Part shown: positions 5,675-56,990 of the stretch, one piece after another
Numbering within the stretch: the first letter of the stretch is position 1
Layout of the letters: the number at the start of each line of letters is the position of its first letter
Assembly (NCBI GenBank): GCA_950097015.1
Contig: CATNEN010000025.1
Location: forward strand, 620,001 to 684,000
Direction of reading: 5' to 3'
DNA: 64,000 nt
Source: Macrostomum hystrix
Lineage: Eukaryota > Animalia > Platyhelminthes
Position numbers and translations under genes: made by a program
Notes under the pieces: model-generated
Database searches by the model: none
What the model saw: the letters and a program-made list of their open reading frames with translations, nothing else
What the model was told of the DNA's origin: nothing

Positions 5675-5854
5675 CTGTAAAAGATTGAAGTCATGGTCAG
5701 TTAAGGTGTGAAGTTGGATACCATTGAAATGTTATAATATATTTAATAATTATAATTGATTAAAACTTCCTAGGTAAGGGTTTGGCACATCCAACTATGC
5801 CTAGTAGGTCTAGAGAGAAGAGAGAAATCATTAAACCTAAGGAATCCATTAGAC

Positions 5855-6740: not shown

Positions 6741-7329
6741 CATTAGACACATTAGATTATGAGACAGGGAAAATATGAGACTAGGGGGGGGGAGATCTAG
6801 CCAGTTCTGATTTTGGCCTCTTGAGAGGAAATGCTACAGCATGTCACTAAAGAGTTAAATTTGTCAAAGTTGCTAGTTAACAACAGCCAAACCTTGGATA
6901 CTATCATGTATTAACTCCTCTTAAAAATTGAAGGTCTTTTGTCCTTTATGTTTCTTACAGAAAACTAGAAATGTACTGCATAGCTAGCTAGCTAGTTTTA
7001 TTAGGCTTTTATTAGTTTCACATAAATTTTTATCAGCTTATATTTTTCAAATAATAGTTTATTGGAACCTTAAGCTACTATTCATATTTATATTTGAAAA
7101 ATTTTACCCTGAAATACCTTGTAAGGATAAGGTTCAACCTGAATGGTTATCATAAATAGTTTTAAAACCTTTTGAAGTATATAGCACAAAAAATAGAACT
7201 AAATTAGTTACACTAGCTGATGTTATGAAGGTGGCCTTTGCCATGGAAAATTCCAGCATATATCAGGGGTCCCTGGTATACTTGGCATACAATCATGGAC
7301 ATAGTGGCCCTTGATTTACACTGAAATTG

Positions 7330-14963: not shown

Positions 14964-17900
14964 ATGAAGATCCCAATGCTTTTTTGGTTTCTAGTGCCAC
15001 AATTAATTGATTGCATTCCTAGAATTTTAATAGACGCCATTTACGATGCCAGGGTACCGCTGACTGACAAGAACACGCGCGTCAGGGTCTCCATGACCTA
15101 CAGAGGCTCGCGTCTTGATATCAGCAATGACACTATTGGTAAGAGAGACAATTACTTTCTGTGAATATGATAGTACCTGTTTGTTTGTTAACAGGTGATT
15201 GTGTGTCTAACATGTGCTTGTGTGTCTAACTGGTGCTTGTGTGTCTAACAGGTGCTTGTGTGTCTAACAGGTGCTTGTGTGTCTAACAGGTGCTTGGGTG
15301 TCTAACAGGTGCTTGTGTGTCTAACAGGTGCTTGTGTGTCTAACATGTGCTTGTGTGTCTAACAGGTGTCTGTGTGTCTAACAGGTGCTTGTGTGTCTAA
15401 CTGGTGCTTGTGTGTCTAACATGTGCTTGTGTGTCTAACAGGTGCTTGTGTGTCTACTTTAACTGTTACAGTTAGCTATTTACCTAAAATATCCTGAATC
15501 TTAGATTTTTTCCCCGTAAAATAGAGGTGTGTAATAGGATTTTTCAGTTCATACCTAACCGTCCACTTCCCAATGACGTCACTGCAACACCCGCACGCAG
15601 GCGGTGGCGCTGTGTACTTTCAGTTTGCCAGTCAGAAGGCACCTTACAAATTCGGCGAATCGATCAGGCTGGCAATTTTACAGTCGACAACATCCGCAAA
15701 CTACGCCGGCGGCTTCTTTGAAGTCGGTGGCTGTTGGGCTACGCTGAGCATGGGAAACTGGAACTGCTCCGTTGTCAATGCTTCATCTGCGGCATTCGGC
15801 CTGCTAATGTACAAGGTTCAAGGTGCGGCTTTTAGGAGGGCTAATTTACTATTGTTAGCAAGTCCCTAATAATTAACTGATAATTTATTAATTACACCTT
15901 CCCCGATTGGGTCAGATGTGCAGCCGACAGCACAGCCGCAGCTATTGCTCGGCGCATCTGAAGGCTGCGCACGGCAGTTCAGTCCATGGACTGGGGAGAC
16001 CCTCAATTACCCCAACTGATGCTGGTACCCATTTATCAGCTGGGTAAACTGAAGGAATGCAGACTTAAGTATCTTGCTAAAGAATACAAATTGTTCCAAT
16101 GGGTATGGGAATCGAACCTCCGACCTTCAAGTCTTGAGTCCGACGCTCTAACCACAAGACTACAACCTCCCTTTCGAATTTCGCATTAAAGTCCCCGAGC
16201 TCGAATCCGCGGCGAGGCTACATTAAATTGGGGCGCAGCAGCGGAGAGAAGGTTCAGATGTCAGCTGAATGGTCCCGGGTGAAAATTGATATTAATTAGT
16301 AATGTCTGGAATTCTTTCTGATTATCAGCTTCTAAATTTGTTATTCTGGAATTATTTATAAGCCGCTAAGTTTCGCTTTTCATCCAAAAATAGACGCCAA
16401 ATACGAACTGACCGCGGTAAAGACGGTGGACTTTTGCAGCAACAGCAGCAGCGCCAACTTAACATTTCAATTGTTGGTGTTTCACCACCTCTCAGGTGTT
16501 TTGCATTCAAGTCTGACGGTGAAAAGCTCGAGTAAGTTGCGCAACAGACGATAATTTGATTCAAATTTATTCAATTCAGTTGTGGCACATGGCGCTAAGG
16601 CCCAAGTCATATAGCCCAACGAAAACCCTGCTTTCCCGTCTCACAGTCCTTTCCGCGGTATCGTCGCGAGAGCAGGTGTTCGGCATGCAGCTGCCGTTCC
16701 TTGTAGCTGCTGGTGACTTACTCCTAGCAATGGCGGTGCCAGCGACAGTCAGCTTCGGATGCAGCCCCGTCTACAATGAGACCTGGAATCCGCAGTTGGG
16801 AAATAATTCGTGCGACCTGGTGACGTCACCGCTTTCCACCTTAATGACGCCACAGCCGAAACTAGTGTACAGCCTGACAGGTGCGAACGGCAAATGGTGA
16901 AAGGACCTAAAGTTTCAAAGAGTGCCCCAAAGTGTGAATTGTATGTTGTCTGTTACCTGCTGCCCAGAACTGCAGTGTGTTACCTGCTGCCCAGAACTGC
17001 AGTGTGTTACCTGCTGCCCAGAACTGCAGTGTGTTACCTGCTGCCCAGAACTGCAGTGTGTTACCTGCTGCCCAGAACTGCAGTGTGTTACCTGCTGCCC
17101 AGAACTGCAGTGTGTTACCTGGTGCCCCCTAAAATGGAGCTTTTTACCTGCATTTTTATTGTCTATCGATACCCCCTAAGCGATTCCTAATGAGTATTCA
17201 AAGCAGTAATTGTGGTACAAACGTTGATTTTCGAACTAAATCTTACAGAGCGCAATCCGGACAGAATGTACTTTATTACGATTCGATCGGCCGAGCTACT
17301 TGTCACCAGTAACATGTCGCTCACTGATCCATTTGTTACTGTACAACCTGTCACCGCGGAGGGTGTTTTAGGGGCCGAGTTAGACAGTTCACCTGTGGTG
17401 CATGGTGAGTTTGTTTTAGCCAACTGCTGACAATGGCTGGGGCTACACTATAGGCAAATGTCAACAAACACATTCAGACCGCTTGAACGCCACTCTGAAC
17501 TACACATTCCGGGCAGCTTTCACCAACGGCAGTCGACTCCGCCTAGTTGTGTGGGATGACGATACTGGCCTCCTGCCCGAGCGTCAGCAGCTGCTGGCCT
17601 GCAGCCTCACTGTCCGCCCAATGATCAGCGGCTCGTGCGGCTCCTCGGCTGCTGGGGGAGTGCTCAAAGTGTCGGTTGGGGAACTGGGTGAGATGTCACT
17701 GCTCAATAAGCAACCGTTTGATTAACTAAAAACCCCTGGTCGGGCTCGTAGCTGTTCCTGTCATCAGGAATGTATTGGCGATGTGTTCATGTCGTCAGGA
17801 TGTGTTCCTGTCAGCAAGGTTTTGACGATGTGGGTTGTGTGACAAAAAGTCACGGCAGATGTGATTGAGTGTGTACCTGTGAGCATACTCATGGGCTTAT

Positions 17901-23126: not shown

Positions 23127-26100
23127 CTAGACAGGCCAGACCCAGTGCACAGCGCGCAGTCCCAGGAACAGGCTCGACGGACATCCAGCCGCTGACGGCA
23201 CCCGGCCCGAAGCGTTGACAAATACGGCTGTGTCTGTTGAATAGGCCACCGCCAGAGAGCCGAAGTCTGACACCGCCATGCGCTGCAGACCGCGGAGGCG
23301 GGAATCTACGATAATTTTGGTTGGGTGGAGTTGATTGGATAGTTTTGATGGGATGGGTTTGATGGGGTGGGTTTGATTGGATGGGTTTGATTGGATGGGT
23401 TTGATGGGGTGGGTTTGATTGGATGGGTTTGATGGGGTGGGTTTGATTGGATGGGTTTGATTGGATGGGTTTGATGGGATGGGTTTGATGGGGTGGGTTT
23501 GATTGGATGGGTTTGATTGGATGGGTTTGATGGGATGGGTTTGATGGGGTGGGTTTGATTGGATGGGTTTGATGGGGTGGGTTTGATGGGTTGGGTTTTT
23601 TGGGGTGGGTTTTGATGGGTTTGATGGGTTTGATTTGATTTGATGGCTTTGATAGGATGGGTTTGATTGGATGGGTTTGATTGGATGGGTTTGATTGGAT
23701 GGGTCTGATGGGATGGGTTTGATTGGATGGGTTTGATTTGATCGGTTTGATGGGATGGGTCTGATGGGATGGGTTTGATTGGATGGGTTTGATTGGATGG
23801 GTTTGATTGGATGGGTTTGATTGGATGGGTTTGATTGGATGGGTTTGATGGGATGGGTTTGATGGGGTGGGTTTGATGGGTTGGGTTTTTTGGGGTGGGT
23901 TTTGATGGGTTTGATGGGTTTGATTTGATTTGATGGCTTTGATAGGATGGGTTTGTTTGGATGGGTTTGATTGGATGGGTTTGATTGGATGGGTTTGATT
24001 GGATGGGTTTGATTGGATGGGTTTGATTGGGGTGGGTTTGATGGGCTGGGTTTCTGGGGTGGGTTTTGATGGGTTTGATTTGATTTGATGGCTTTGATAG
24101 GATGGGTTTGATTTGATGGGTCTGATGAGATGGGTTTGATAGGATGGGTTTGATTGGATGGGTTTGATTGGATGGGTTTGATTGGATGGGTTTGATTGGA
24201 TGGGTTTGATTGGATGGGTTTGATTGGGGTGGGTTTGATGGGCTGGGTTTCTGGGGTGGGTTTTGATGGGTTTGATGGGTTTGATTTGATTTGATGGCTT
24301 TGATAGGATGGGTCTGATTGAGATGGGTTTGATTGGATGGGTTTGATGGGATGGGTTTGCTGGCATTGTCAGCTGGTGTATTTGAAGCCAGTGAGTCAGG
24401 TGACCAACCGAACACAAGTCTCATGGTGGATTCGCCCGGAGTGACAGTCAACAGACCGCCGTTAGGCCAATCGGCCAAGGCTAGCAGCCGTTCCGTGCCG
24501 TCTGGTCCGGTTTGAAAACTCGGGTGAAGCGGATTGGCGTCCAGGCCGCTGTGCATGCTCAGGGCCAGCTGGCCTGAGAGTGGCGGTGAATGGCGATTCT
24601 AGCTTCGATACCGGCTGCGATACTAGCTCTAATGCTATTTCAATACTAGCTTCGATACTAGCACTGATACTAGCTTCGATACTAGCACTGATACTAGCTT
24701 CGATACTAGCTCTGATACTAGCTTCGATACTAGCTCTGATACTAGCTTCGATACTAGCTCTGATACTAGCTTCGATACTAGCACTGATACTAGCTTCGAT
24801 ACTAACTTTGATACTGTAGAGGCTTTAGTTAGTAGTCGAAAGTAATGATCAACTGAGCGCTGCCCAGCGGGCGACACTATATATTTGATGGATCGATATT
24901 TTGGGGTGGGGGTACGGCAGGTGAGAGTTGATAGCTGAGCGCGTGTAAGGCGCTGATTGGCTGGAGCGATCAGACACAAAGGGAGGCGAAGTAAACAGTA
25001 CGCAAGCCTTACGTACAGATACCAGCTTCGATACTTGCTCTGATACTAGCTTCGATACTAGCACTAATACTAGCTCTGATACTAGCTTCGATACTTACTT
25101 TCATTACTAGACTCAATTTTTTCCACTACCGCTTTGCATAAAATCCAATTAAAAATGCTATGAAAACATTCGCTTCCTCTGAAGCCATCCAGATAGCCCC
25201 GGCAAGACACTGTTGCCAGCCACGCACCGCTGGGCAGCACCCTGAACAGTCGCATGGTGTCCCCGGCCACATGCAGGACTCGATCGCGCCTCTCGGACAC
25301 CGCCAGCCGGCCAGTCGGGTTTGACGAGAAGAAGCGGGAGAAAAAAGGGATTCGGCGCCCTGTGACCAGATCCACGGCAATCAGCGGCGCCGAGGCGTTG
25401 CTAGACGAGTGGAGAAGCAGGGTGCCGCCTGGAATGGAAAATAGGGGATAATTTATTAGCGAAATGCATTCGAATAATCATTCTGGCAAGCAGCTCTGAC
25501 CTTGAGGCAGAACAACCGCCCTATCGATAGCGTTCGGCACTAGCAGCCTGGCCCGCTCAACGCCGACACCTTCGCCGAAGTCGTCAACGCTGACGGCCAC
25601 CATGAGGACTAGGCCGAAAGTTCCTTCCGTCAGCGCAACTAGCAAGTCCGAGCTCGAGTCCGGCAGGCATAGGATGCGGCTGCCGACATTTTCGGCGCCG
25701 AATCGCGAGACTGCCGGTCGATGAGCGGTCCCGACTGCCGAAGCACGGTTAATCCGCAGTACTCGGCCATTGTCACAGGCAGTCCAAACTGTGTCAGCCG
25801 GACGTCGGTAGGCCAGCAGCCTCGGCCGACAGCCCACCAGCAGCGACTCCGGCGCGAACCAGGACTTCGTTGAGCCAGTCGGATGCAGAATCAACAGCCG
25901 CTGCTGGCTGGGCTGAGCTGCGTACAGAAGGCGCCCAGCCGCTGCCAGCTGACTTTGACTGCCTCCGTCGCCGCCGCTGCCCCAGTTGCATTCGCCCAGT
26001 CCGTTTGAATCGACGCAGCCGCACAGCTTGGCGGAGACAGGACGCTTCACTGAGCAATCGGTGACGTCTAAGATGGAGTAGCCGTCAGAGTGGAAGGCGA

Positions 26101-31805: not shown

Positions 31806-32562
31806 GTATTCCTCGAAATATGATAAGTATCACAAGCCTTCTATATTTCAGTCTTGAATACATATCCGATTTGCAAACCATACGAGATGTACTGCATTTT
31901 CATAGAAAACGGATTGCAATTTATTTGCTTTTAAGATATCAAAAGAGACGTCGTATAAAGTAAGAGGCTAGATAAAACCGCATTCAAAATTAGATAAGAA
32001 ATGAGTTGGGCTACACTCAGAAGTACAAAATGTTAAAGCAAGCATGTATCTAGACATCAGCTAATAAGCGATTAACAAGCGGTGAGGCATTCAAGAATAT
32101 TGTGATATATTGAAATAAGCTACAGTAAAAAATCGTCAATATAATCAGTTGCCTAGATAAGTTGGCGACAGCCACAGAGCTATAAATAAAGCTGACCTGT
32201 ATATGACAGCCTTGACAATAAATACAGACAAATAAACATGCTGCACTACTATGCAGAACTTGACAGTAGTGCAAAAAGCTAATTGGCATCGCTTTTTGGA
32301 TAATTAAGCTAAAATTGGTCCGACAAAGAATTTTAGGATAAACAAATTGACAGTTTTTGAGTCTTAATTAAAATTACCCCGATTACTTTTTGTAAATAAC
32401 AAAGTTAGGGAACAACGTTGAAAGTTGCCTGCTAATTATAACCTTGTGGATCTTCTGTGACAAATAAGCAAAACAAACACTTAATTTCGGAGGCACAAAA
32501 ACTATTATACATTTTTCAAACTATTGACACACCTTGGAAGCTACTTGATAAAGCTAGGGAAA

Positions 32563-33530
32563 TCTGAGGATGGGAACTACAAGAAATCTGAGGATGGGAA
32601 CTACAAGAAATCTGAGGATGGGAACTAGGAAAATCTGAGGATGGGTACTACAAGAAATCTGAGGATGGGAACTACAAGAAATCTGAGGATGGGAACTAGG
32701 GAAATCTGAGGATGGGAACTACGGGAATTCTGAGGATGGGAACTACGGGAATCTGAGGATGGGAACTACGGGAATCTGAGGATGGGAACTACGGGAATCT
32801 GAGGATGGGAACTAGGGAAATCTGAGGATGGGAACTAGGGAAATCTGAGGATGGGAACTACGGGAAATCTGAGGATGGGAACTACGGGAAATCTGAGGAT
32901 GGGAACTATGGGAATCTGAGGATGGGAACTACGGGAATCTGAGGATGGGAACTACGGGAATCTGAGGATGGGAACTAGGGAAATCTGAGGATGGGAACTA
33001 CGGGAATCTGAGGATGGGAACTAGGGAAATCTGAGGATGGGAACTACGGGAATCTGAGGATGGGAACTAGGGAAATCTGAGGATGGGAACTAGGGAAATC
33101 TGAGGATGGGAACTACGGGAAATCTGAGGATGGGAACTACGGGAAATCTGAGGATGGGAACTATGGGAATCTGAGGATGGGAACTACGGGAATCTGAGGA
33201 TGGGAACTAGGAAATCTGAGGATGGGAACTAGGGAAATCTGAGGATGGGAACTACGGGAATCTGAGGATGGGAACTACGGGAAATCTGAGGATGGGAACT
33301 ACGGGAATCTGAGGATGGGAACTAGGGAAATCTGAGGATGGGAACTAGGAAAATCTGAGGATGGGAACTACGGGAATCTGAGGATGGGAACTAGGGAAAT
33401 CTGAGGATGGGAACTACGGGAATCTGAGGATGGGAACTACGGGAATCTGAGGATGGGAACTAAGGGAATCTGAGGATAGGAACTACGGGAATCTGAGGAT
33501 GGGAACTAGGGGAAGAGAAACTGGAACTAT
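32563..33530. repeat. 23-24-bp minisatellite just past the KLHDC8 stop
   Basis: CTGAGGATGGGAACTACGGGAAT repeated. Confidence 0.95.
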
Positions 33531-33597
33531 GGGAACCTAAATAGTAACTATGGGAATCAAAGCGAGCACTGCAGTCTCCCAGACAGACTAGTTGCAG

Positions 33598-36500
33598 TTA
33601 GTCGATGGCGGCAAAGTCTAGGTAGTCCACGGCCAGGTTGAGGCCGGCCTCCGCAATGCCGCCGGCCAGGTACAGTCGGGAGCCGTGCGCCAGGTGGGCG
33701 CAGCTCATGTGGCCAGACGGCAGGGTTGAGTGCTCAATCCAGGAGTTCGAATCCGGCCTGTACATATGGCAGGAGGTGCTGGGCCGGCCCGTGTTGTCTG
33801 TGGGAAATGCATATTAGGTCTAGGGTCAAGCTACAGGTGGCAGAATACACAAGACAGGCTATTTAGTTGACGTGAGGATATCAAGAGAATTCGAGGTGGT
33901 AAAAATCACAGAGCTTGAATTTGAAAATATTGGAGCAGCCACTTACCGAAGCCGGCAGCCAGTACGACTCGACCATCGTCCAGGGTGCACTGGGCAGCGT
34001 CCGCTCGGCCGATGAGCATAGGTGAGCACTCCGACCATTGCTCTGCGAGGGGCGGATAAGAGGAAGATGGAATCATAACCTGTGATATGAGCCCATCAGG
34101 ATCAGTGTCTATCACACATTATATCATACCTAATGACCCTAGCGGGATCATACCGCATGACCCTAGCGGGATCATACCGCATGACCCTAGCGGGATCATA
34201 CCCCATGACCCTAGCGGGATCATACCCCATGACCCTAGCGGGATCGTACCACATGACCCTAGCGGGATCATACTCCATGACCCTAGCGGGATCATACAGC
34301 ATGACCCTAGCGGGATCATACCCCATGACCCTAGCGGGAACATACTCAATGACCCTAGCGGAATCACACCCAATGACCCTAGCGGGATCATACCCCATGA
34401 CCCTAGCGGGATCATACCGCATGACCCTAGCGGGATCATAGCCAATGACCTCATTAGGTTTACAGCCCATGACCCCCAGCAGAGTCATATCCATGACCGT
34501 CAGCGTTCTCTGCAGCCGCCCTCACCAGTGTCCAAGTCGAAGCTGTGACATAGGCAGGAGAAGCCGTTCGCCAGGTTGGCGGGGTCCAGGCCGCCCATGC
34601 AGAGCACACGCCGGCCGGTGCGGGAGTAGATTGGAAACACGCGGCCGTGACTGGGCAGATCCGGCAGCTGGCGCCATTTGCAGGCGCGAAAGTCGAACAC
34701 TTCACAGCCGGCCACCGGGGTGCGGCCCTCGCGACCGCCTGTTTTGTGGCATTTAACGATGGAACAACTACGAGTAATAAACTGGTACAATAGGACTTAA
34801 GAAAAAATTATATTATTATCAGGATTTGTGCTCAATTGGGATCTCGGATCATCTGGACTGAGCTCATTTGGGATCTCGGATCATCTGGACTGTGCGTATT
34901 TGGGATCTCGGAGCATCTGGACTGTGCTCAATTGGGATCTCGGAGCATCTGGACTGTGCTCAATTGGGATCTCGGAGCATCTGGACTGTGCTCATTTGGG
35001 ATCTCGGATCATCTGGACTGTGCGTATTTGGGATCTCGGAGCATCTGGACTGTGCTCAATTGGGATCTCGGAGCATCTGGACTGTGCTCAATTGGGATCT
35101 CGGATCATCTGGACTGTGCTCATTTGGGATCTCGGATCATCTGGACTGTGCGTATTTGGGATCTCGGAGCATCTGGACTGTGCTCAATTGGGATCTCGGA
35201 GCATCTGGACTGTGCTCATTTGGGATCTCGGAGCATCTGGACTGTGCTCAATTGGGATCTCGGAGCATCTGGACTGTGCTCATTTGGGATCTCGGAGCAT
35301 CTGGACTGTGCTTATATGGGATCTCAGAGCATCAGAGCATCTGAGTATCTGAGCATCTGAGCTCGGAGCAATCGAATGGAGAACTCAGCATGAGGAGATG
35401 AGGAGAACCTCATGCATTACGGCTGTAAATCACGGCAAGGAGTTGCTTCAACGCAAAGAACACTTAAAATACCATTGAAAGCAGTTGCATTTTAAACAGT
35501 TGTTCAAAATGAAGCCTCCATCCCGGCTTTACAGTTGTCTTGGCATTGTTATCATTGTTTTGCCAGCCCTGCCTATTGAAGCAGCAAAAAAGTTACACGT
35601 CATTGCTCACTAATTGCGCTACGACTGAGAGAATTAAATAAAGCAAATACGAGGAAAGCAGAATAGTCAATAAAGAAAGCGAACAATGAGCTAACGCGAT
35701 TCGTCAAAAACAATGGGTAGAATAATCAATCTGATACACAACACACGAATATAGTGAGATAGTTGCTGGGCGGATGTTGGAGAGGTGAGATGGGACTCAT
35801 TTTGGAGAAGCCAATTAGACTATTGGACCAATCCTAGCCTCACATTAGGGACAGGGGAGGCGTAGAGATGGAGAAAAATGCTGAGGGACCAGCATAGCAG
35901 GTCCCTACTTTTCCTATAAATGGAGCCGCGACGGCGACAGATTCCAGACTTCGCTGAATCACGCAACGAAGCCTAATCCAGGTTCCAGGACACGTTTGAA
36001 GCGTTAAGCAGAAGACTGCAAGGGCGCCCCGAAAAAAAGCAAGAGGTAAGTCAAATGCTCTTTGGCTTGTAGATATGCCTTCATTAATTTTCGTTCTGGG
36101 AACCTTGTGTCGCCTTGTCTTCTAACGCGTTCTAGTGCAAGATATCGGGACAAGATAACTTTCCGCAGTGTTTCAACCATCCTCTGTCGCAGCGTTAAAT
36201 ATTTGAAGTCAGTGAGGTGTGTCGGTGAGGCCTCTAAGAAAACGAACAAGAACCACGTCTCAAACGTGGTAAGGGGCACGCAACGATGAAGAAGTGAGTC
36301 TGAAGTAGCACTCACAAGCATACTTAAGATTGGCTAGCGAGAATTGCAATATGACAAATTAATGAGGATAGGACAATTTTAAGGCAAGTTCAGGCTACTG
36401 CTAAAGGCGGTTTCAATTCTGTGATCTTTGGTCCGATTGATCAACACGACAGATAATAACTTTTGCCGTTATACAAAAGCGGAACACCCCCTTATGCCCG

Positions 36501-39500
36501 CAGATGCTGTCTAATAGTATCGCCAAACTGCTAGTGCTGGCAGTTGCTTCTTCTTTGCTTCTGCTGACAATCGGCGAGGTTGCCAACGCAGCTGCCATTG
36601 CCGCTGCTTCCGAGCCACCTCGAGACGTCGTGGGTTCGTTTCACCTCGCGGAACAGCTGGCTGCCTCCGAGCTGCTCAACGAAGAGGAGGCGCAGCATCG
36701 GCAACAGCTGCGTCTGATGCTAGAGGCTCTGGAAGAGGAATACCCTGCCTTCGAAGAGTATTTTAACAAGCAACGACTGGAGCGGCAGAACAGTGGCCGA
36801 CACCGACAGGCGCAGAAGAAGTGGTACGAGTGGGGCAAGTGAAACGAGAGCTCCATTGTCGCGCGCAACAAACACTAAGCCTGGTCTGCCACAGTCGAGA
36901 CGGTGAAGCAAAGACTAATAGGAACAGAGAAAGAATCAAAATGTGTGAAAGAATGCTTCAAAACTGCTCTACAGCTTCTATTGCGCTTTGTCTTTTGTTT
37001 CTCTTTAACATATCCAACTGAAAAATAAATAAATTGAAGAAAGGTATTCAGCAATTTTTTGAAAAACTTAAGAGTAAAAAATACTTCTGGAGGATGGACA
37101 GAATGCTAATTAACAAGAAACCATCAGGTTTAACTTGTGCTTGAGTGTTCAGGTTGTTTGTCTTTTTTACTGAGACGCTACTCACTCACAATCGGTACAT
37201 GATGAAGTACGAGCGTTTTGGTTGTTGGGTTTATTAATAGTAAATAAGTAGAAACAAGAACTCATATAATTAGACTGTTTAGAACTATTTTTAGTGCAAT
37301 GCTTTAGATCGCAACTTTTTCAACTGAAAATGACATGCTCAAAACTGTATTAAAAATAATTCATTCAGTTTAAACTGAAATTTTACGGAAGCGACATGCT
37401 CGGCAATGAGCTGGTTTTTTATTTCTGCTTAACTTATCTTGCACATGCTATGTCCCTCACAGGCAGAGAGAGAACTATTATAACTACGAGCTAGTTGCAA
37501 ACAGCGTACAAAGAAAGACACAGGCCGAAAGATACTCTGTGCCACACGGAGCAGAACCAAAAATCAGCAAGAATAATACTTGGATTTGCTCACTAGCGAC
37601 AGCGAGACGCAATTCTAACTTCATTTCGGTGTTCTTCGCCGCAGTCCAACTTAAGCTAGGGATGAGCAATTGCAGACGTGATTGCCTATCGGAGGGCTGG
37701 CAGAGTGAGGGCGGGCACTGGCAAGTTGATGCCGCCCACATGGCATTGAAGCGTTGGAGGAAAAGGCTCCGATTTCATCATTTCGCTTCCACGCCCTCGA
37801 GAGTACTGACAGCATGAAGCTGAATGATACGCATCGTAGTCCACTCCAATGGCTTTGGAGAAGCGAACCGACCCCACCCAGGAAGGTAACTTTGAAGCTA
37901 TTATTCTCGCCCACAAAAGTTCTAGTGTTCTTTCCGAAAAGCTAGAGGATCTGTTGAGGTGAGGTGAGCATTTTTTCGAGCGTATTGCTAATGGGAATAA
38001 ACTAGAAAAAGCAGAAAAAAATTATAAAACCATGCAGACGTAAGAGCAGTTTGACGGTAAATTGAGAAAGCAGACTCAATGTCTACAAAGAACCATGAAT
38101 AGTCTATCTAAAACAGTTTTTGTGGGGGTTTTAAATACTTTTTTCTGTCTCGCATATTCATTAACGTTCAAATGCGCTTGCCCGCAATTGAGAAAGACAA
38201 TAACATTGTTTCAATTCAACAGTTGACTACGCCTGGTAAAGATGCATGGAAACTTGTCGGGAATAATAATTGTCTATAATTAGAGCATTCCACAGTCATG
38301 AGCAGTTATTGTTTACGGTGAACAATAGGCTGTTTGCGTAGCAGCAGCGGCGTAACAGCATTAGCAGCAGCAGCTTAAATTAGATAAGCGAAAGCGCATC
38401 CCAGCAGCCAGCTGGCTCCCAACAAGTGAAATGATGCTTAAAATTAAAACAAAACTCTTTAGGGATGGCACCAATATCAAAATCGACATCTCGGCAATAC
38501 AGTTTCTAAACCCGCACATTTTCAGCTAACAATGGAAACGGCTTTCATGTGTTTTGGGCCGCGCTCATCAAAGCAATAACCACGGCGATGCACGTGTTAT
38601 CCCAGCTCTTGATCAAATCCCCTCCGCTGACTGCCTAGCAACTCTCAGCTGCGCGCCCACCAGCCATATTCTCCCCCATAGAAGGCATTCGAAATTGTTG
38701 CTTTGGAAAAACAATGACGAGCTATTTTAGTTGTGCTCGATGAATTTACGTTTGGATTATCGCATTCGCCTGATCAGCTAGCTGGCTATTGCTCCATTTT
38801 GCTCGATTCCTCTCAATGCAATTACAACGTACAAAGGGCTACAATCGAAGTATGTATGCTAAATCAATGTGTTTTTTCCATATTCAGCAACGAAAAGCTA
38901 AAATGAATAGGCAAGTTTTATGTAAGACTATGTTTTTCTTTTTATTCAAATCCAAACCCAAAAAGAGCCTTCATTAATATATTTACTTTTATAAAGTGAA
39001 TACAGTACTGGAATGAACAGTAGTCGAAGGGTGTAACAGAATAAAATAATAATAATTGAGTACACCTTTCCCGATGAAGCTAGATATGCAGCCGACAGCA
39101 CACATGCGTCTATTGCGCGGCGGATATGAAGGCTGCGTACGGCTGTTCAGTCTATGGACTGGAGGGGACGCCACATCCACCGTGAATTACCCTAGCCGAT
39201 GCTAGTATCCATTTAACAGCTGGGTAAAGTGTCTTGCTAAGTGACACAAATTATTCCAGTGGAGTCAGGAATCGAACCTGGATCTTTAAGTCGTTAGTCC
39301 GACGCTCTAACGACTATATGGGCTATACCCCTTTTATTCATGGTAATAAAATCTACTATAATGTTCTTAAAATATCGCATAGACAATCATAGAGCCTAGC
39401 AATTCTGGTCTAATGTAGAAGTGCTATTCAAACTATGAAGCAAAAGCAAAAGGTTCAAAGCAATTAGGCTACAGATTTAACACCACTCCATAGTTGTATT

Positions 39501-47582: not shown

Positions 47583-48134
47583 GAGTGTTGTTGATTTGTA
47601 CCTTAAAACGCAAAGTAAAAACGCACCATCTATCTGAACATATAGAAGTGCCGACATCAAAGTGAAGCACCGCACGTTATGGCTATTTAGCCAGTTAATA
47701 AAAACCTTATTTCTTTACTTCCTGAATCAATACTCGAAAAGCTGTTGAGAAGCAAAACTATAAAATACGTGTAGCATTTTGTTGCATGGCATAATTTCGT
47801 GTAAATTATGAATTATGCGAAGAAAAATCAACCTGTTCTTGCCAGCGATTCTAGCAATCAATTAGCGGTATGAATTATACTAATTACTAAACTATTTATA
47901 ATTGATTTTAATCCGAAGCTTAACGTAATTTTAGAGGCAAAAAACAACTCCGAAGAAGATTTTTAAGATGGAAATTGGCTCTAACTCGCCAATTATATAT
48001 TTCTGCGATTCTTTTAAAAGAACAAATTGCACATTTCACCATTACTTTGATTTGGAAAAAGATCTAACGGCCGAACATTATTGTTGCTACTGGAAAGCTA
48101 CCTTTTTTAATTAACTTCTACTGCTTAATAAAAA

Positions 48135-48882
48135 ACTGAAGATCCGGAGGTGGGGAAATGGCTGCCCACTGAAGATCCGGAGGTGGGGAAATGGCTGCCC
48201 ACTGAAGATCCGGAGGTGGGGAAATGGCTACCCACTGAAGATCCGGAGGTGGGGAAATGGCTGCCCACTGAAGATCCGGAGGTGGGGAAATGGCTGCCCA
48301 CTGAAGATCCGGAGGTGGGGAAATGGCTACCCACTGAAGATCCGGAGGTGGGGAAATGGCTACCCACTGAAGATCCGGAGGTGGGGAAATGGCTACCCAC
48401 TGAAGATCCGGAGGTGGGGAAATGGCTACCCACTGAAGATCCGGAGGTGGGGAAATGGCTGCCCACTGAAGATCCGGAGGTGGGGAAATGGCTACCCACT
48501 GAAGATCCGGAGGTGGGGAAATGGCTACCCACTGAAGATCCGGAGGTGGGGAAATGGCTACCCACTGAAGATCCGGAGGTGGGGAAATGGCTACCCACTG
48601 AAGATCCGGAGGTGGGGAAATGGCTACCCACTGAAGATCCGGAGGTGGGGAAATGGCTACCCACTGAAGATCCGGAGGTGGGGAAATGGCTACCCACTGA
48701 AGATCCGGAGGTGGGGAAATGGCTACCCACTGAAGATCCGGAGGTGGGGAAATGGCTACCCACTGAAGATCCGGAGGTGGGGAAATGGCTGCCCACTGAA
48801 GATCCGGAGGTGGGGAAATGGCTGCCCACTGAAGATCCGGAGGTGGGGAAATGGCTGCCCACTGAAGATCCGGAGGTGGGGG
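48135..48882. repeat. 33-bp highly homogeneous minisatellite
   Basis: CTGAAGATCCGGAGGTGGGGAAATGGCT(A/G)CCCA repeated about 22 times. Confidence 0.97.
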
Positions 48883-49003
48883 ATGTGTATTTTCACTGAA
48901 AATACATGACTCAAAAGTAGAAGTTTAACGCCAAAAAACAAAGAAAATATTCATTAAGCTGAAAAATCGGCCCCAAAATTGTCTTTGAAGCATTTCGGAG
49001 CAC

Positions 49004-52000
49004 TCAGGTGAGCAATGCACGGTCTAAATTATAGCCGCCTAGTCCGCCTCCGCTGACGGAACTGCCGCCGCCTAAATTAGTCGGCAGTCGTTTATCTTTG
49101 ACTTTAAACGGCAGCTTGAGTCTGGCCAAAGACTTTGGCGGCTCGCTAGCAACCGGTTCTAACCGACTGGGTCGGCTAGTACCACGACTGCGCCGACGCT
49201 GCGGTTGGCTGCTGTCAGACTGCTGCTGCTGCTGATGATGATGATGATTGTCAGATTTCTTCTGCGAATCAGACGGGTCAGGATGCTGTTTCTGTTTAGT
49301 GCCCGATGGCTTGCCCTGTTTCTGCTGCTTAGACTTTGACTGAGTTTGAGCCTGACCAAATCTATCGGCGTACTGAGAAGTGAGTAGGGTGCGCTGAGCT
49401 GCCTGTTCAACCCTGGCCAGGTGGCGCATCTGCGATTCGCCCGGACGGCGGCGCAAATTAGCCTGTTTAGCCGGGGCGCGGCGCATTCCGGCGACGTCGC
49501 CAGCCTCCGGGTTGGTGCGCCGGCGAGATTTTAGATAGCGCCGGCGCTCCTTCGGCGACAGCTCTGAAGCGGGTAAGCAAGGAAGCGGGTGTTGATGGCG
49601 ATGGATAAAATTAAACTCGCAACCAAAATCGGAAAATAATCCGTGGACAACGCAGGAACCAGTATTACTTTATCATTTGAGCAGACGCAGATTTTTCTCT
49701 TCGGTTGAACGATTCGAACTCCCGACGTCTCAGTCAAAAGTCTAAAGGTAGGCTACAAACTCCGACATAATTCCATATTTCTCATTTCATTACAAGTCAA
49801 AAGACAAGAGTCTGTATAACGTTCTTTTACTATGGCGCACCATTTGGTGCCACTGGACCCGCAGCCAACGAGGAGGCAATTCTGCCCATTTCGCTGACTC
49901 CTGAGCACACACGCACACAGATTCTGTACGTAGGCAGGCACAGGTGTATACATCTGCCCAGACTTTCTCAGGCAGTGTACACTCTCATATTACCTTGAAG
50001 GTTGGCCCTAAAGGGCGTAAATTGCACGACCCCAAGTCCCCAAGTCCCCAAGCTTTCTCACCGCGGCTTGCCCCAAACTGAATGCGGCCTCGCAGCAGAA
50101 TCGAGCTCACGGACTTTGGCGCGAGAGGCGAATGCATCGCCAACTGACTCCCATTTACTATACTTAGCAGTCCTATAAGCCACTAATGAGCATATTAAAT
50201 TTGCAATCTTTCAAGCTCCATTAGATTCGCTGTAGGAGAACGAGCTAGGAAAACTGAAAAATCTAGGATTAGACTGATAGGATAACATACTCAAAATTTC
50301 GTCATTAACGGAATCAGAAGAAAATTCGTACATATCTTAGGCAAGGACTCGAATATGCGTTAACTGCTTTGATGCGAGCTCGAAGCAAGAAATTTCATCT
50401 ATCTGAGCTGCATTTAACACACGATAATGCAAGCAGAAATATGAGAGCAGTTCCTGTTTGTGTCTGACACTGGTTATTTCGATCAGCATGAGAATCGTGA
50501 GCCTGGTGAGGATAAACAAGGAAAATGCTAGAAACACACTCCCACAGTACACCAAGAATCGACAAGAAAAAATAACTTACAGGAAATGCGACTGAACGTG
50601 ACAACCAATGCGAGAATAGGAAAATAAGTAATTTTTTAATTCATTGATAGACGCTGACAATATGCTAAACAGTCGCTTACAATCCATGAAATTATAGTGC
50701 CTTATAATGAACTCCACTAATTACACATTACCGGGGATTTTAAAGGCTTATATTTCCAACCCATTGAACAACGGAACTCAAACATTATGAACTTTGTGCT
50801 ATAAGACAAAGCTTTATGGTTAAAATAAGAAAGACTAATGATTTTGAAATACTCAATTGACCACCTGAATTGAAAATAATGATATAGCCTAGCAGCCTTG
50901 CACAATTATTGCCCCAGAAAAGAAGACAAGAAATAATCTGTCTAAAAAATCCGATAATAAAATTCTAAGGCGCTAATGATATGAAAGAGGCAATAAAAAC
51001 TTTTCTTTCTAAATTTCTACTTTCTTAGCGCATTATATATTGACAAAAATATACAACTACAACATTAGTGATTCACTCGTAAACTCACCTTTTATATATG
51101 CTTAGAATGATTTGGAACAACTGACAATTATACGCCGTATATTAACCAACAATACTACTTACAAAAAGTATAAAAGTAGTATGCTACGCAACTAACACGA
51201 AATTAGATTAAAAAAGGAAATAATTTTTCTTTTTATTAAGCCACATTTCTTTCAGTTAATCAAACGAAAATGATTAGTAACAAGTAACCAAATATTATAA
51301 TTATAAATTATAAAGGGTATTTATAATATTTGCAAGTAACTACTAAATAAAAAGAAGCTGATAAAAACGTACTTTCTATATTCTAGGGAAAAACCACCAG
51401 ACCATCAGTCCACTGGTGGCACTAAAGAACTTTAGTGCACTGACCAATACCCTAGAACTTTAGTGCACTGACCACTACCCTAGAACTTTAGTGCACTGAC
51501 CACTACCCTAGAACTTTAGTGCACTGACCAATACCCTAGAACTTTAGTGCACTGACCACTACCCTAGAACTTTAGTGCACTGACCAATACCCTAGAACTT
51601 TAGTGCACTGACCAATACCCTAGAACTCTAGTGCACTGACCAATATCCTAGAACTTTAGTGCACTGACCAATACCCTAGAACTTTAGTGCACTGACCAAT
51701 ACCCTAGAACTTTAGTGCACTGATCATTGTTGACCAATTACCAAAGAATTTTACCATAGAAAGCACAGGCCAATGCCCTAGAACTTAAGTGCACTGAGCA
51801 TTGTTGACCAATACCAAAGAATTTTACCATAGAAAGCACAGGCCAGTGCCCTAGAACTTAAGTGCACTGACAAATACGCACCCGAACAAACAATCTATAA
51901 GCTTATCAAAGCATGATTTAAGCAATTACAAGGCGCAACAAACTAACCTGCCACTTTTTTCAGCCACATAAACTCGCGTAACGACCTCGGCAGGAAGCGA

Positions 52001-52242: not shown

Positions 52243-53120
52243 TATCTGAATTGATTTATTTGCTTATAATTTAGCGAACAGACTAGCATAGATTTATCAT
52301 ACCATAGAAAATGTAATGCATGCAAGTAGTAAATACAGTATATAACTGTAGGTCATTTCAGATGGGCAAGAATAGTCACTATAGTTCAAAATTCTTATGG
52401 CATACTACAAGTTATTAGTTATTAGGTTCCACTTAGATTTCAGCACTAAAGGCTCATAAGGCAAATAAAGCTGGTTGCTGATACTATTATAAAGGTTTGT
52501 GATAAACACAAAGAAATTGAACAAATTCAGATATACTCAAACATTGCTAGGCAAATAGGCTAAAAATAGCAGCTCAATGAAATGGTTAGGTTATGGTTAC
52601 ACCTTTGATATACCATCAAATGTGGCGCATCTGAAGACTGCTTATGGCTGTTCAGTCTATGGACTAGGGGGACAACACACCCACCCTCAATTATAATGTA
52701 TTTGTGCCATAAAATAAATGATTCTTAACTGAAGTGGATATATAGGGTCCTTTTCGTAGAATAGTTCTGGACTATTAATTAAAACACTAAACACACCGTT
52801 TTGTTTTGTTTTTATTTGAGTTTGCATGTGATAATTAGAATAAGATGATAAATTAATAAAAATGAATGGCTTGATGTTTGACTGCTGGTTTTAGAAAACA
52901 CTTTTCACTCATTTTTATCTTTCCTGTATCTCGCCGTTTATTCCCCAGTTGGATTGGCCCATAGACCAATTAAATTTATTTTTTGGCCATTGAAATTTAT
53001 CTGGCCGGGACAGATAAACATTTATCTGGTCCGGTGACAATTATCTGGCTTCAACTGTGGAATAAATACATTATCAACCACTTGTTTGACTTATCTATGG
53101 CCGAAAACGTCTTCGGACAT

Positions 53121-53157
53121 CGTTTCTTGGCCGAGGCGAAGCCTCGGCCAATAAACG
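53121..53157 (+). other. 17-bp-stem hairpin with a GCGAAGC core
   Basis: CGTTTCTTGGCCGAGGC-GAA-GCCTCGGCCAATAAACG, one mismatch. Confidence 0.9.
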
Positions 53158-53408
53158 AGTCCTCAGCCGTTCCCGGCCAAAATAAATAAAAAAAGTGGGT
53201 GATAACTTATACTTAATTCACATTCTGTGATTAGAAAGTCCGAGGCAGCATTTAATGGTCTCGAGGCGAGCAAAGCCTGAGTTATTGTTATTTTTATTTG
53301 AACCATAGACAAATGTTCATTACGAAAGCAAAGAAGAAAGCGGATGAAGTCTTTAATGCCGAAAGCCACAAAATCCAGTCTTGGATGCAGCAAAAGCAAT
53401 GTAACGAT

Positions 53409-53512
53409 ATATACCCGATTTTTTTCGGCAGCAATTGCGTAAGCTGAAGCCGCGTAGCGGCCGCGTAGCGGCTTCAGCTTACGCAATTGCTGCCGAAAAA
53501 AATCGGGTATAT
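53409..53512 (+). other. Perfect 104-nt T-shaped palindrome
   Basis: A 41-bp perfect stem (53409-53449 with 53472-53512) is capped by two identical CCGC-GTA-GCGG hairpins. Confidence 0.95.
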
Positions 53513-53516
53513 GTCA

Positions 53517-55393
53517 TTATTGTACCCTTTTGACTTCCCTTGTCTATGGCCCAGACATAGTGCGGATGCTGAGTATGAAATGCGATTGTTGCCGGAATGT
53601 TGCCGGAGAGCAAATTTAGTCGCTCTCTAAATGAAAGGGTTGTAGAGATAATTAATCGTTTATGGCAAATTTAAAGGACAGTGAAGACAGCTAGCCTGGC
53701 TGCCATGAGTTAATTCTCAAGTTGATTTTGAGCTTGAATTAATTCTCCTATTCGGAGTGCAAATAGGAAAAGTAGCTATGATTCGCTACGCAAACATTCC
53801 TGGCGGAGAAATATGTGGACTCTCCACGGACGAGTTGGCTTTTGTCACCCGAGAGTCGAGCACGCGCTACGTTCTGGAGATGGACAACCTGGATGCGTCG
53901 TCCAGTTCCAACGGGCTGCCTGAGCTACGTAGCGAAGATCTGGAAATGTTGGACCGACTTGAGAGTGACTCAGTGCCGAAATCGACCGAGACGCAACGGA
54001 AGCTTCACGTGGCAAGGTTCCGACAGTTCCTCAACGAGAAGGGGCTCTGCCAGGAGTTTGAGCGTGTTCCGGATCGATTTTTGAACGATTATCTGAGGCT
54101 TTTCTATTCATCCCTTCGAAAGCAGGATGGAACTTACTATGCGCCAAAGTCTCTCATCTGTTTTCGTGCGGCTATTCAACGCCACCTGCAATCCCCGTCC
54201 GTTAATCGCCAGGTGAACATCGTTACCGGAGAAGCCTTCAAGCGTTGCAATTGCGTTCTTGTCGCCATGGTGAAAATGTACATGGAAGGACACGTCGAGA
54301 AGGTAGACAAATACGAAGCTATTTCCGAGGACGACATGCAAACAATTCGCGCATACTTTGACCGAACGTCCCTTCGTAAACTGCAGGACGAAAACATTTT
54401 CAACGTTCTGCTCCATTTCGCACTGCGAGGCCGAGAAAATCTGAGAGAGTTGACACCTGGATGTTTTGAGATAGTGTCAGAAGGAGGTACGGAGTTTGTA
54501 CGCGTCGCTGTCGCCATGCTGTCGAAAAATGTTAAAGCGTCGTTGAACGAGAAGGCATTCAAGGATCTCAAGTTAGCTCGGATGTACAGCGTGCAAGACA
54601 AAACTGTTTGTCCCGTCGAAGCCTTTAAAATGTACGTCTCTTAACTACCGAATGGATGTGAGGTGTTGTTCCCAAGGCTCAATAAGTCTGGCTTCTCAGC
54701 CTGCCAACGACTCGGCAAAGATTCACTTGGAGACTTCATGAAGAATCTGAGTGCGTGTCTGGCTCTGCAGCGGAAGTACACCAACCATTGTGTGCGAGTA
54801 ACCACGGTGAGTAAAGATCGCATGGCCTACTCACTTCAGTAAAACTGTAAGAATACTGTCTTACCCAACTGCTGAAACTTAGGTGAACTGTTTGGCCAAG
54901 GCCGGTTTCGATAATCAAGCGATTACACTAATGACGGGACACAAGAATTCGAGCTCAGTGGATGTATACAAGCGGCGAGACATGGACTGTGTGGCCCGAA
55001 TGAGCGCTTGTCTGGCTGCCTATGGGTCCAAAGTCACCAAGATTGACGACGATGCGGAATCCACCATCGAAAGTGTGACAACTGGGTCTGATAGAGGCGA
55101 GCTGATGAAAGCACCCGAGGGCGGCCAAGACCTGCCGAGAAGCCTCTGTGGTGGTCAGTTCCACAACTGCACATTCAACTTTTACGGAAAGTAAAACAAT
55201 TGATTCGATCGGTTTGTTCTTAAGAACTTTTTGTGACTATGAAACACTTTCGCCGTGTTGCTATTGTTGTTCCTTGTTTTGATAGCCAAATACATTCGTC
55301 TGAAATCCGGCAACAATCGAAAAAAGCCGACAAACAATTAAATTGTTACCGCAAGTATGAATGCCGGAAACCATAGACAAAAGGGTACAATAA
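53517..55393 (+). mobile_element. Crypton-like tyrosine recombinase transposon cassette with inverted repeats
   Basis: TTATTGTACCCTTTTG..TCTATGG (53517-53549) is inverted to CCATAGACAAAAGGGTACAATAA (55371-55393). A perfect 14-bp subterminal IR CGATTGTTGCCGGA lies at 53583-53596 and 55306-55319. Confidence 0.7.
53778..55194 (+). pseudogene. DUF3504/KCTD1-type tyrosine recombinase with one nonsense codon and one intron
   Basis: ALRGRE (R), in-frame TAA at 54642-54644 (YVS*LP), YTNHCVR (H-x-x-R), intron 54807-54882 (GTGAGT..TTAG), then TGHKNSSSVDVYKR (H, Y). Start position uncertain (53778 or 53880). Confidence 0.82.
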
Positions 55394-55396
55394 AAC

Positions 55397-55830
55397 ATGG
55401 ACAGCATTGACGAGGACTTCAACTTTGATGCCTTTTTGGTGTCCCTTAGAAAACTCAGCTTTTCACTGTAATTTTTCTAATTGGAAAGGTGTACGGACTG
55501 CGAGGAGGGCGCGAACTACATGAGCTGGAGTTTAACAAGCAAATCCAGTTGACTACTGAAGGCTCCGAAGAGTTGCTGGTGTATACGGAGAATACAGTTT
55601 CAAAAGTGAGATCATGTGGTTTGAAGACTTTCAAGCGGCCAATTAAGCGTAATGTCGCATACCATACTGTTGACCATAATCGCTGCCTGGTCTGTCTGTA
55701 CAAGCGATACATCAGTCTCCGGCCCAACCAGTGTACCAAGCCGCAACTCTTTCTGTCCTGGTTTAGAAACGATGCCACAGTTCGTGCAGGGAAGTTTCAA
55801 AACCAAGCACTCGGGCATAGTCCGACATAG
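55397..55830 (+). pseudogene. Second, divergent DUF3504-type recombinase fragment, internally deleted
   Basis: Short MDSIDEDFNFDAFL start, then after an acceptor-like site GLRGGRELHEL..LVYTENTVSK..RCLVCLYKRYISLRP..QALG. The catalytic C-terminus is missing. Confidence 0.7.
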
Positions 55831-56046: not shown

Positions 56047-56990
56047 GTGCGATCTGACACCGGCAGAATGTTTTTTCGGCTTGCAGCCGCCTTCCCTAAC
56101 GAGTCTCCATCTCAAGCAACTGTTTACAACTGGTATCGCGAGTTTCGTTTGAAGCGCACCAGCCTGAGTGATGAAGATCGCAGCGGCCGGCCCTCGACAG
56201 TTGTAACCCAGCACAACATAAATGAAGTAGAGCGACTGGTAAATGAGAACAGGCACATAACCTATGATGAGTTACAGTCGCAACTGGGCATTGGATTGGG
56301 GCAGGTGAATGCAATCCTACACCAACACCTTGGCCTTCGGAAGCTGTGCACCCGATGGGTACCCCATTCGCTGTCACTTGAGCAGAGACGTGCAAGGGTG
56401 ACTGGTGCGAGAAGCATTAAGAAAGCTTTTTGATATTGTTAATGGTGATGAGACTTGGGTGTACCTGTATGACTCAGAGACAAAGCGTCAGTCCACAGTC
56501 TGGTGCTTTTCCAGTGATGATCATCCAACCAAGTTGCAGAGACCCCAGAGTGTTGGAAAGAAGATGGTGGCCTCCTTCATCACTGTCTCTGGCCATCTGG
56601 TGTTGGTGCCCCTTGAGGACCATCGCAAAGTGACGGCAGCATGGTAGACCAGCCACTGCCTTCCTTAAGTCATCAGCGCTTGGTGCCAAAGGTGGCCAAA
56701 CACAGGCCTCCAGCTGCACCAGGACAATGCGAGCGCTCACACTGCATCACTGATTTCGCGTTCCAGGAGCAAAATTGAGTGAAACTGGTCTCCCACCCAC
56801 CATACTTGCCTGACTTAGCCCCCTGCTACTTTTTTCTTTTCTTAACAGTCAAGCAGCAAATTAAGGGCCAGAGATTTGAGTCTCCAGGCATAGCCTTGTA
56901 ATCCTAAATGCATGTGATGGACACCCTGCCAAGTTCGGCCTTCTCACAAGCTTTTGAGCAGTGGTTTTGCAGAATGGAGAAGTGCATCGT
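56047..56990 (+). mobile_element. Decayed mariner transposase
   Basis: N-terminal HTH (VYNWYREF, EDRSGRPST), WVPH, IVNGDETW, LHQDNA and HPPYLPDLAP. Frameshifts and stops present; third catalytic Asp lost; TIRs not found. Confidence 0.88.

Follow-up and report, generated by a model that had tools for sequence, protein, structure and literature searches.

The DNA considered here is a stretch of 64,000 nucleotides from the flatworm Macrostomum hystrix (contig CATNEN010000025.1), referred to below as the window. Close to a gene for a tyrosine recombinase it carries, at positions 53409-53512, a long and flawless palindrome. The question raised by this locus is whether the palindrome is part of a mobile element and, if so, what it does there. 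A first-pass annotation had described a T-shaped structure beside a Crypton-like cassette, which might serve as an origin or att site. The reading preferred here, with a probability of roughly 60%, is that the palindrome forms the left-terminal, major part of an att-like recombination site of a 1991-bp Crypton-type transposon. Features of the element are given on the forward strand (+), apart from the CAAT of the left flank, to which no strand is assigned.

The left arm of the palindrome (53409-53449, 41 nt) reads ATATACCCGATTTTTTTCGGCAGCAATTGCGTAAGCTGAAG and includes the box TTTCGGCAGCAAT, which is common to relatives of the element. It is followed by two tandem, identical 11-mers, CCGCGTAGCGG, at 53450-53460 and 53461-53471, and then by its exact reverse complement, the right arm at 53472-53512 (41 nt), with complementarity at 41/41 positions. 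The flawless 41-bp stem and the two identical CCGC-GTA-GCGG units that had been described at 53409-53512 are borne out by the sequence. Each of these two 'ears' (together 53450-53471) contains the mini-hairpin motif GCGTAGC (PMC13037366), at 53452 and 53463. Folded as single-stranded DNA (ssDNA), the palindrome has a predicted energy of -61.4 kcal/mol, compared with -17.6 +/- 2.5 in 200 shuffles (z = -17). A scan of the whole window returned it as the sole palindrome scoring at least 16, and no further copies of its arm and tip words were found within the 64 kb. Weaker, imperfect pairing reaches outward to 53402-53519. The centre can be drawn in two ways, as a T shape at -56.1 kcal/mol or as a linear hairpin with a GTA/GTA bubble at -59.8 kcal/mol, and the T-shaped conformer is therefore not the optimum predicted by the nearest-neighbour model. 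The T shape stays plausible, since the nearest-neighbour parameters give no credit for the extra stability of GCGNAGC mini-hairpins (PMC13037366).

The boundaries of the element were taken from contigs of four public runs (X1, X2, X5 and X10) aligned to 53000-55800; such contigs lose rare forms. It was found that one X1 contig joins 53396 to 55388 and skips exactly 1991 bp, with the four letters CAAT fitting either side of the junction. The X1 contigs of the two flanks show the same limits, as the left one stops at 53400 and the right one starts at 55388. In runs X1, X10 and X5, sequence of other flanks is joined to the element at 53397/8 and 55391, and these loose ends indicate further copies at other loci. 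In X2, the element is covered about 5-7 times as deeply as the unique flank. Runs from 7 studies, under three organism labels, contain the stretch. The mobile unit is thus 53401-55391, a complete element of 1991 bp with one gene, and the palindrome lies inside it as its left terminus; besides the skip and the loose ends, the same limits are indicated by analogy with six related contigs (L004-L009) described below. CAAT is common to the left flank (53397-53400, the crossover region) and to the last four bases of the element (55388-55391), a 4-nt microhomology. It occurs once in the empty site, and there is no target-site duplication. The window locus is either an insertion polymorphism or a precise excision, in both cases with exact ends, and the element is a recently mobile tyrosine-recombinase transposon of the Crypton type.

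The assignment of the palindrome to a Crypton-type element is therefore upheld by the empty-site contig and by the boundaries of the other copies. Its placement 'beside' the cassette was mistaken: the start of the cassette had been set at 53517, the true left end is 53401, and 116 nt had been missed. That the palindrome belongs to an unrelated miniature inverted-repeat transposable element (MITE) is ruled out by the same empty-site contig, as the palindrome lies inside the polymorphic 1991-bp unit.

A perfect 41-bp stem is hard for assemblers, and it must be considered whether the palindrome is an assembly foldback or a chance inverted duplication unrelated to the element. In favour of this, an X1 contig that is anchored in the left flank and runs across the palindrome differs at three positions of the right arm only (T>C at 53487, 53488 and 53491), which amounts to three A·C mismatches in the stem. 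The stem at the window locus could be 38/41 in the X1 individual, and the changes may be due to allelic variation, to conversion by a paralogue or to a chimeric contig; if the mismatches are real, an assembly with k=31 could cross the palindrome. Contigs of both X1 and X2 cover the palindrome with no gap in the tip. The palindrome lies within the polymorphic unit, and homologous palindromes occur in about 16 relatives, in independent assemblies from several samples. With contigs from several runs and organisms in agreement, the foldback alternative is regarded as ruled out, its remaining probability being negligible.

The two ends of the element are parts of one structure. The final 16 nt of the element (outer arm L, GACAAAAGGGTACAAT, 55376-55391, the right terminus) are complementary to the 16 nt after the palindrome (outer arm R, ATTGTACCCTTTTGAC, 53519-53534). 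Outer arm R had been annotated as a left inverted repeat that begins 5 bp after the palindrome. The gap is correct, while the repeat is not a separate feature but belongs to the periphery of one and the same structure. Joining the ends in silico brings the right terminus up against 53401 and lengthens the palindrome, and one hairpin-shaped palindrome of about 180 nt is completed. The joined-end fold has an energy of -81.4 kcal/mol and pairs from CCATAGAC (55371) to GTCTATGG (53549). At its joint, the unpaired GTAACGAT (53401-53408), a bulge directly after the crossover, faces GTCATT (53513-53518), and the crossover ACAAT|GT is found at this asymmetric bulge near the base. The outermost pairing involves the sub-terminal motif GTCTATGG (53542-53549) and its inverted partner CCATAGAC (55371-55378); the motif has 7 matches in the window against 1.5 expected. 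A second sub-terminal inverted repeat, CGATTGTTGCCGGA (53583-53596), has its partner at 55306-55319, with 100% complementarity over 14 nt.

The 1991-bp unit holds a single gene and no reverse transcriptase. The gene (53778-55194) consists of exon 1 (53778-54806) and exon 2 (54883-55194), separated by a GT..AG intron of 76 nt (54807-54882), and the palindrome lies 265 nt upstream of its start codon. The spliced model of 446 codons contains all the catalytic residues, R (LRGRE), HxxR (NHCVR), H (GHKN) and Y (VDVY), which align with invariant columns of 24 homologues. The window copy alone has an in-frame TAA at 54642-54644. In X2, X10 and X5, position 54642 is a C at full depth (CAA, Gln), and intact genes therefore exist under the other organism labels. 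About 60 homologues with 37-51% identity were collected from aquatic metagenomes and Logan assemblies, where intronless genes on contigs of about 2 kb encode proteins of 440-490 amino acids. Among 24 of these homologues, Pfam matches were obtained to PF00589 Phage_integrase (22/24), QRICH1 (18/24) and DUF3504 (14/24). The window protein itself matches PF25561 with E = 1.8e-5, which is under the gathering score, and its best relative of solved structure is XerA. Its sequence places the protein among the tyrosine recombinases of the Crypton/DUF3504 kind; DUF3504 and QRICH1-type domains have been traced to animal Cryptons by Kojima and Jurka (PMC3212892).

The same architecture is found in the relatives. 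Contigs L004-L009 carry an identical protein in different flanks, that is, at different insertion sites. Homology among them sets in at the outer base of an 89-nt palindrome, AAT|GTAACAATATT, and extends as far as ...GATATTACAAT|. In the whole survey, about 16 distinct palindromes of 60-120 nt were counted, each 200-350 nt upstream of a homologous gene and on its coding-strand side. Palindrome and recombinase occur together in these independent relatives. In 12/13 relatives, a right end (...ACAAT) 1.75-1.85 kb downstream can pair with the 10-20 nt behind the palindrome (ATTGT...). The left flanks end in AAT in 13/13 relatives and in CAAT in 9/13, and a 5'-side bulge of 2-5 nt is present at the same position of the base. 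Head-to-tail elements, in which an ACAAT end is followed directly by the palindrome of another element, were seen at L004:2053-2160 and L020:2100-2266, which means that the completed joined-end site exists in chromosomal arrays. Relatives are paired on one contig in L001, L004, L011 and L020.

Some variation of this plan was also observed. Contig L014 carries at 1935-2034 a second palindrome of about 100 nt, which has a TTTT loop without the mini-hairpin tip and whose right arm ends at the terminus ...AGATGTAACAAT; some members of the family thus have large hairpins at both ends. The distant Cryptons (20-31% identity, L032-L089) are mostly without a comparable palindrome within the stretch examined, and the feature is for this reason not claimed for all Cryptons. 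Two of them, L055 and L048, with about 25% protein identity, have the same module, C-GA-stem-G(N)NA-stem-GA-G.

The pairing in these palindromes is better preserved than their sequence. Covariation was assessed on ten alignable relatives with a consensus hairpin of 33 pairs and 500 shuffles. Paired cells made up 86%, compared with 64% after shuffling and about 40% with slid partners. Changes on both sides were seen in 26/33 pairs, and 0/500 shuffles matched the observed values. The arm sequences are divergent, with a median ungapped identity of 33%. G-T pairs are rare in the stems, which points to DNA complementarity rather than to an RNA hairpin. Among the internal loops, the tandem GA/GA mismatch, known as the most stable of its kind in DNA, is the most frequent. 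It occurs 11 times in 15 palindromes, on the coding strand only, and often at the sides of the tip. The most constant part is the tip, a G+C stem of 4-7 bp that closes a loop G-(N)N-A. The tips read GCGTAGC, GCGTTAGC, GCGTAAGC or GCGTCAGC, on the coding strand in 16/16 distinct palindromes. In the window and in the relatives, the tip is an exact instance of GCGNAGC/GCGNNAGC, an extra-stable DNA mini-hairpin with a sheared G·A pair and a melting temperature near 76 °C, which has been reported at ssDNA replication and transcription origins of phages and plasmids (PMC13037366).

The double tip, which gave rise to the description of a rabbit-ear T shape, is not a general property of the family. 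Each relative surveyed has a single tip, and so does an X1 paralogue with a loose end at 53463, ...GCTGAAGCA|GCGTAGCGGCTTCAG. The double tip is present in organisms A and B, and the copies of organism C are 7 nt shorter in the tip region. The two ears are therefore a lineage-specific 11-nt tandem duplication of the mini-hairpin, neither the ancestral form nor a required one, and the T shape loses its standing as the key feature.

It had also been proposed that the palindrome is a parvovirus-like, T-shaped terminus that primes rolling-hairpin replication. In the window copy, two ears of 4 bp can indeed fold on the 41-bp stem, and an inverted tip, of the kind sought as flip/flop ear variants, was met in the contigs of two relatives: the tip loop at L002:1-44 is opposite to that of L001, and the loop at L005:43-131 is opposite to that of L004 (TTAC, TAAC). 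Either the tip is truly inverted in these two or the assembly is ambiguous there. L002, assembled with k=31, starts inside an arm longer than k, and the tip of L005 is truncated and rearranged; they were kept out of the count of tip orientations, because the de Bruijn assembler is unable to orient the tip there. All the distinct tips that were counted have one orientation (16/16), whereas rolling-hairpin replication predicts 1:1. Two ears are confined to the window lineage, against single tips in about 16 relatives and at least one paralogue from the same organism. Moreover, the window copy lacks both a HUH/Rep or NS1 gene and a second terminal hairpin, and integration is precise, with a 4-nt microhomology. 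A protein-profile scan of IMG/VR found no relatives, which weakens any virus reading. A parvovirus-like terminus is thus very unlikely. Of the earlier suggestion that the hairpin serves as an origin or att site, the part that implied replication of this kind finds no support, while the att-like part fits, because the crossover lies at the base of the hairpin, the ends complete the palindrome, the strand of the tip is fixed and the stems covary.

In the preferred reading as an att-like site, the steps of recombination could be as follows. The recombinase would bind the inverted arm sequences that flank the crossover and would exchange strands at CAAT. Joining of the ends would take place in an excised circle, such as has been proposed for Cryptons, or between neighbouring elements arranged head to tail. 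The crossover at the joint would be enclosed by a local inverted pair, made up of the outer arm (AAAAGGGTA) and the beginning of the inner arm (TACCCGATTTT), and such a pair is the usual format of the core site of tyrosine recombinases (PMC3212892). An arrangement of the AAAAGGGTA/TACCCGATTTT type recurs across the other side of the hairpin with a different spacer. The bulge and the one-stranded features of the tip would confer polarity on the site. The long inner hairpin would be used extruded or single-stranded, as the coding strand, in the way that integron integrases use folded attC.

The last step is the most tentative one. Use of the folded coding strand is suggested because the inner arms far exceed a recombinase footprint, and because the least variable features stabilise the hairpin of one strand only. 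That the folded form of the palindrome is the substrate of the recombinase is the favoured mechanism, yet it is given a probability well below one half. The same caution applies to the wider proposal that Cryptons of this clade may recombine via a folded hairpin, either as a single strand or as an extruded coding-strand cruciform. Should they do so, GCGNAGC and the tandem G·A might act as signals for strand choice and nucleation, a predicted role put forward tentatively, and the head-to-tail trains would perhaps follow from the same site logic.

Several observations weigh against the att-like reading or its folded-strand part. A symmetric protein complex bound to a duplex site would likewise lead one to expect dyad symmetry and covariation. 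The case for a folded strand is therefore indirect and draws on the motif at the tip, the mismatched G·A pairs, the bulge on one side and arms of 40 bp, longer than any protein footprint would call for. The arms share the boxes GGGCAG-N-AAT and AAATT, and their conservation is thus partly one of sequence and not of structure. The window palindrome itself is without GA bubbles, and the opposite tips of L002 and L005 depart from the fixed strand. No circle junction (55391->53401) was found among the contigs of the four runs, which tend to drop rare forms. Finally, the evidence from relatives comes from metagenome contigs.

Some of the features that argue for a folded strand could be read differently. 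The hairpin might be a replication or priming origin of a circular or single-stranded intermediate, in which case recombination would need CAAT and the outer arms only. The fixed strand of the tip and the inner arms of 40 bp, longer than the usual recombinase footprint, would fit such an origin, as would the reported occurrence of GCGNAGC/GCGNNAGC mini-hairpins where replication and priming start in ssDNA phages and plasmids (PMC13037366). However, the 1991 bp hold the recombinase gene and no replication gene, and if the hairpin had nothing to do with recombination it would be left unexplained why the crossover is exactly at the base of the structure and why the ends complete it. An origin in place of an att-like site is therefore considered unlikely. 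An origin, priming or regulatory role and a role in recombination could coexist.

The constant position of the palindrome, always 200-350 nt upstream of the gene and on the coding-strand side, brings up another explanation, namely that it is regulatory or structural baggage (a promoter or insulator, or a trigger for small-RNA silencing) that is kept palindromic by intra-strand repair and plays no part in transposition. A match to the Rfam microRNA precursor MIR898 points the same way, with 48.9 bits against a gathering value of 75; being sub-threshold, it amounts to a generic likeness to long hairpins only. Against an RNA hairpin stand the rarity of G-T wobbles and the loops, which are mostly not of the RNA-type GNRA, and an RNA run was not confirmed among the runs that carry the stretch. 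In addition, the boundary of the element is the base of the hairpin in several insertion sites, and the sequence that comes after the hairpin can pair with the right end. Baggage of this kind is judged quite improbable.

The att-like site of the present element can be compared with known systems, first of all with the Cryptons themselves. As far as the account of Cryptons by Goodwin et al. 2003 cited in Kojima and Jurka 2011 (PMC3212892) goes, the likeness lies in the single tyrosine-recombinase gene with R..HxxR..H..Y. The Phage_integrase, DUF3504 and QRICH1 matches and the lack of a reverse transcriptase place the window element close to the animal CryptonA/DUF3504 group. Cryptons have short (4-6 bp) terminal direct repeats as the recombination substrate (PMC3212892), and the window element likewise has a 4-nt direct repeat, of which one copy is derived from the target, with no target-site duplication. 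A further likeness is the presence of non-autonomous, high-copy derivatives nearby. For animal Cryptons, no terminal repeats were found, either direct or inverted, and a palindrome or hairpin is not mentioned in that account (PMC3212892). In contrast, this clade has inverted outer arms of 16-19 nt and a terminal palindrome of 60-120 nt with a mini-hairpin tip, which is completed by the joining of the ends. These terminal inverted arms and the palindrome are a departure from the published description and no ground for exclusion from the Cryptons.

The closest structural parallel is the attC site of integrons (PMC5027507, PMC3053210). Like attC, the site is an imperfect palindrome of about 60-140 nt in which structure is conserved above sequence, and unpaired bases on one side give it polarity. 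With the crossover in the outer box, the site is divided on integration and a few nucleotides remain at the far end of the 'cassette', and there is a tendency to form head-to-tail arrays (L004, L020). Unlike attC, it is found in a eukaryotic host, the recombinase is encoded inside the 'cassette' and the bulk of the palindrome is 5' of the gene. The Crypton enzyme is related to IntI by the tyrosine-recombinase fold only, and the use of a folded strand is in the present case inferred. The palindrome is not classed as attC, and the protein is not IntI-like as far as its sequence tells.

As for the tip, the two copies of GCGTAGC in the window, the tips of the relatives and GCGAAGC in a neighbouring repeat are the exact motif of mini-hairpin DNA, and the sheared G·A closing pair on two G-C pairs agrees with that motif in the window and the relatives. 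Such mini-hairpins are known from ssDNA origins of phages and plasmids, from promoters and from synthetic uses (PMC13037366); as the tip of the recombination site of a transposon, no report was found in the literature searched. Compared with the inverted terminal repeats (ITRs) of parvoviruses and adeno-associated virus (AAV), there is a likeness in the long stem that is able to carry two small hairpins, and the bubbles near the tip are reminiscent of them. The element differs in having one hairpin end, no flip/flop, no Rep/NS1 and a T shape that is not conserved, and both its integration and its exit proceed by site-specific recombination at the hairpin base. The attP of CTX phage and the targets of protelomerases are further examples of an enzyme of the tyrosine-recombinase family acting on hairpin or palindromic DNA. 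In CTX, it is the host's XerCD that acts on the single strand of the phage, unlike in the Crypton element. Protelomerases cut the centre of the palindrome and give hairpin ends, whereas the Crypton element is cut at the base and inserts in the ordinary way; a protelomerase-type site was rejected on this ground.

To our knowledge, the mechanism by which Cryptons move has never been worked out. Animal Cryptons as published lack recognisable termini, so that it is difficult to draw their limits or to test them, and full-text literature searches, including those on Macrostomum, found no description of a Crypton palindrome or hairpin. For a recently active element, the ends, the crossover (CAAT at the bulge) and a conserved structured site are now defined, an empty site occurs naturally and related samples contain intact copies. 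The question of what a Crypton recombinase recognises thereby becomes directly testable. The present analysis adds the proof from the empty site for the window copy, the census of the architecture across relatives, the covariation test and the signature of a fixed-strand mini-hairpin with GA/GA, and it reduces the T shape to a local duplication. If the substrate were indeed folded, tyrosine recombination on structured single strands would no longer be purely bacterial, and this clade would be a eukaryotic counterpart of recombination at integron attC and CTX attP. The ACAAT ends, the palindrome tipped with GCGNAGC and the GA/GA bubbles can also serve as an aid to annotation, as they locate the boundaries of such elements and of their non-autonomous derivatives.

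The surroundings of the element contain further sequences of related kinds. Upstream, 53000-53281 is a very high-copy short repeat with CCGAGG/CCTCGG words, at an X2 depth of 2000-8650 compared with about 70-90 in the unique flank. It includes, on the forward strand (+) and outside the 1991-bp element, a separate imperfect palindrome of about 135 nt (53071-53205; X2 depth 6000-8650), whose tip GCGAAGC lies at 53136-53142. The repeat with this palindrome is probably a non-autonomous derivative of a related Crypton. Another abundant form was seen in X1, where a contig with a depth of about 1026, compared with 10-18 for single-copy sequence, joins 53376-53450 to 53819-53880 and skips 368 nt. It consists of a near-copy of the left arm and the first 60 nt or so of the conserved N-terminal coding region, which points to an abundant sister subfamily or a deletion derivative in organism A.

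On the right, 77 nt beyond the element and on the same strand, 55468-55830 is a remnant of a different Crypton-type recombinase (DUF3504, E = 1.2e-5; 31% identical to residues 198-293 of protein P0009). Insertion of the element into an older Crypton gene was considered and rejected. When 60 homologues were compared by tblastn with the reconstructed empty site, only about 55468-55752 was matched and nothing across the junction, and no N-terminal part of the remnant was found upstream of the insertion. Further on, at 56047-56647, there are fragments of a mariner/Tc1-like transposase in two frames, with weak matches to HTH_32 and HTH_Tnp_Tc3_2.

Between 3400 and 51800, in many places, the window is unusually rich in minisatellites with periods of 12-64 nt and arrays of up to about 1 kb, examples of which are found at 23190-24200, 48000-49030, 32550-33600 and 34050-35430. 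The word CAGTCCATGGACTG marks a dispersed repeat of about 60-80 nt that is present in either orientation, at 10384-10466, 15939-16000, 39110-39166, 4306-4359 and 52621-52694. This repeat is unrelated to the Crypton ends, and it supplies 2/7 of the matches to GTCTATGG in the window.

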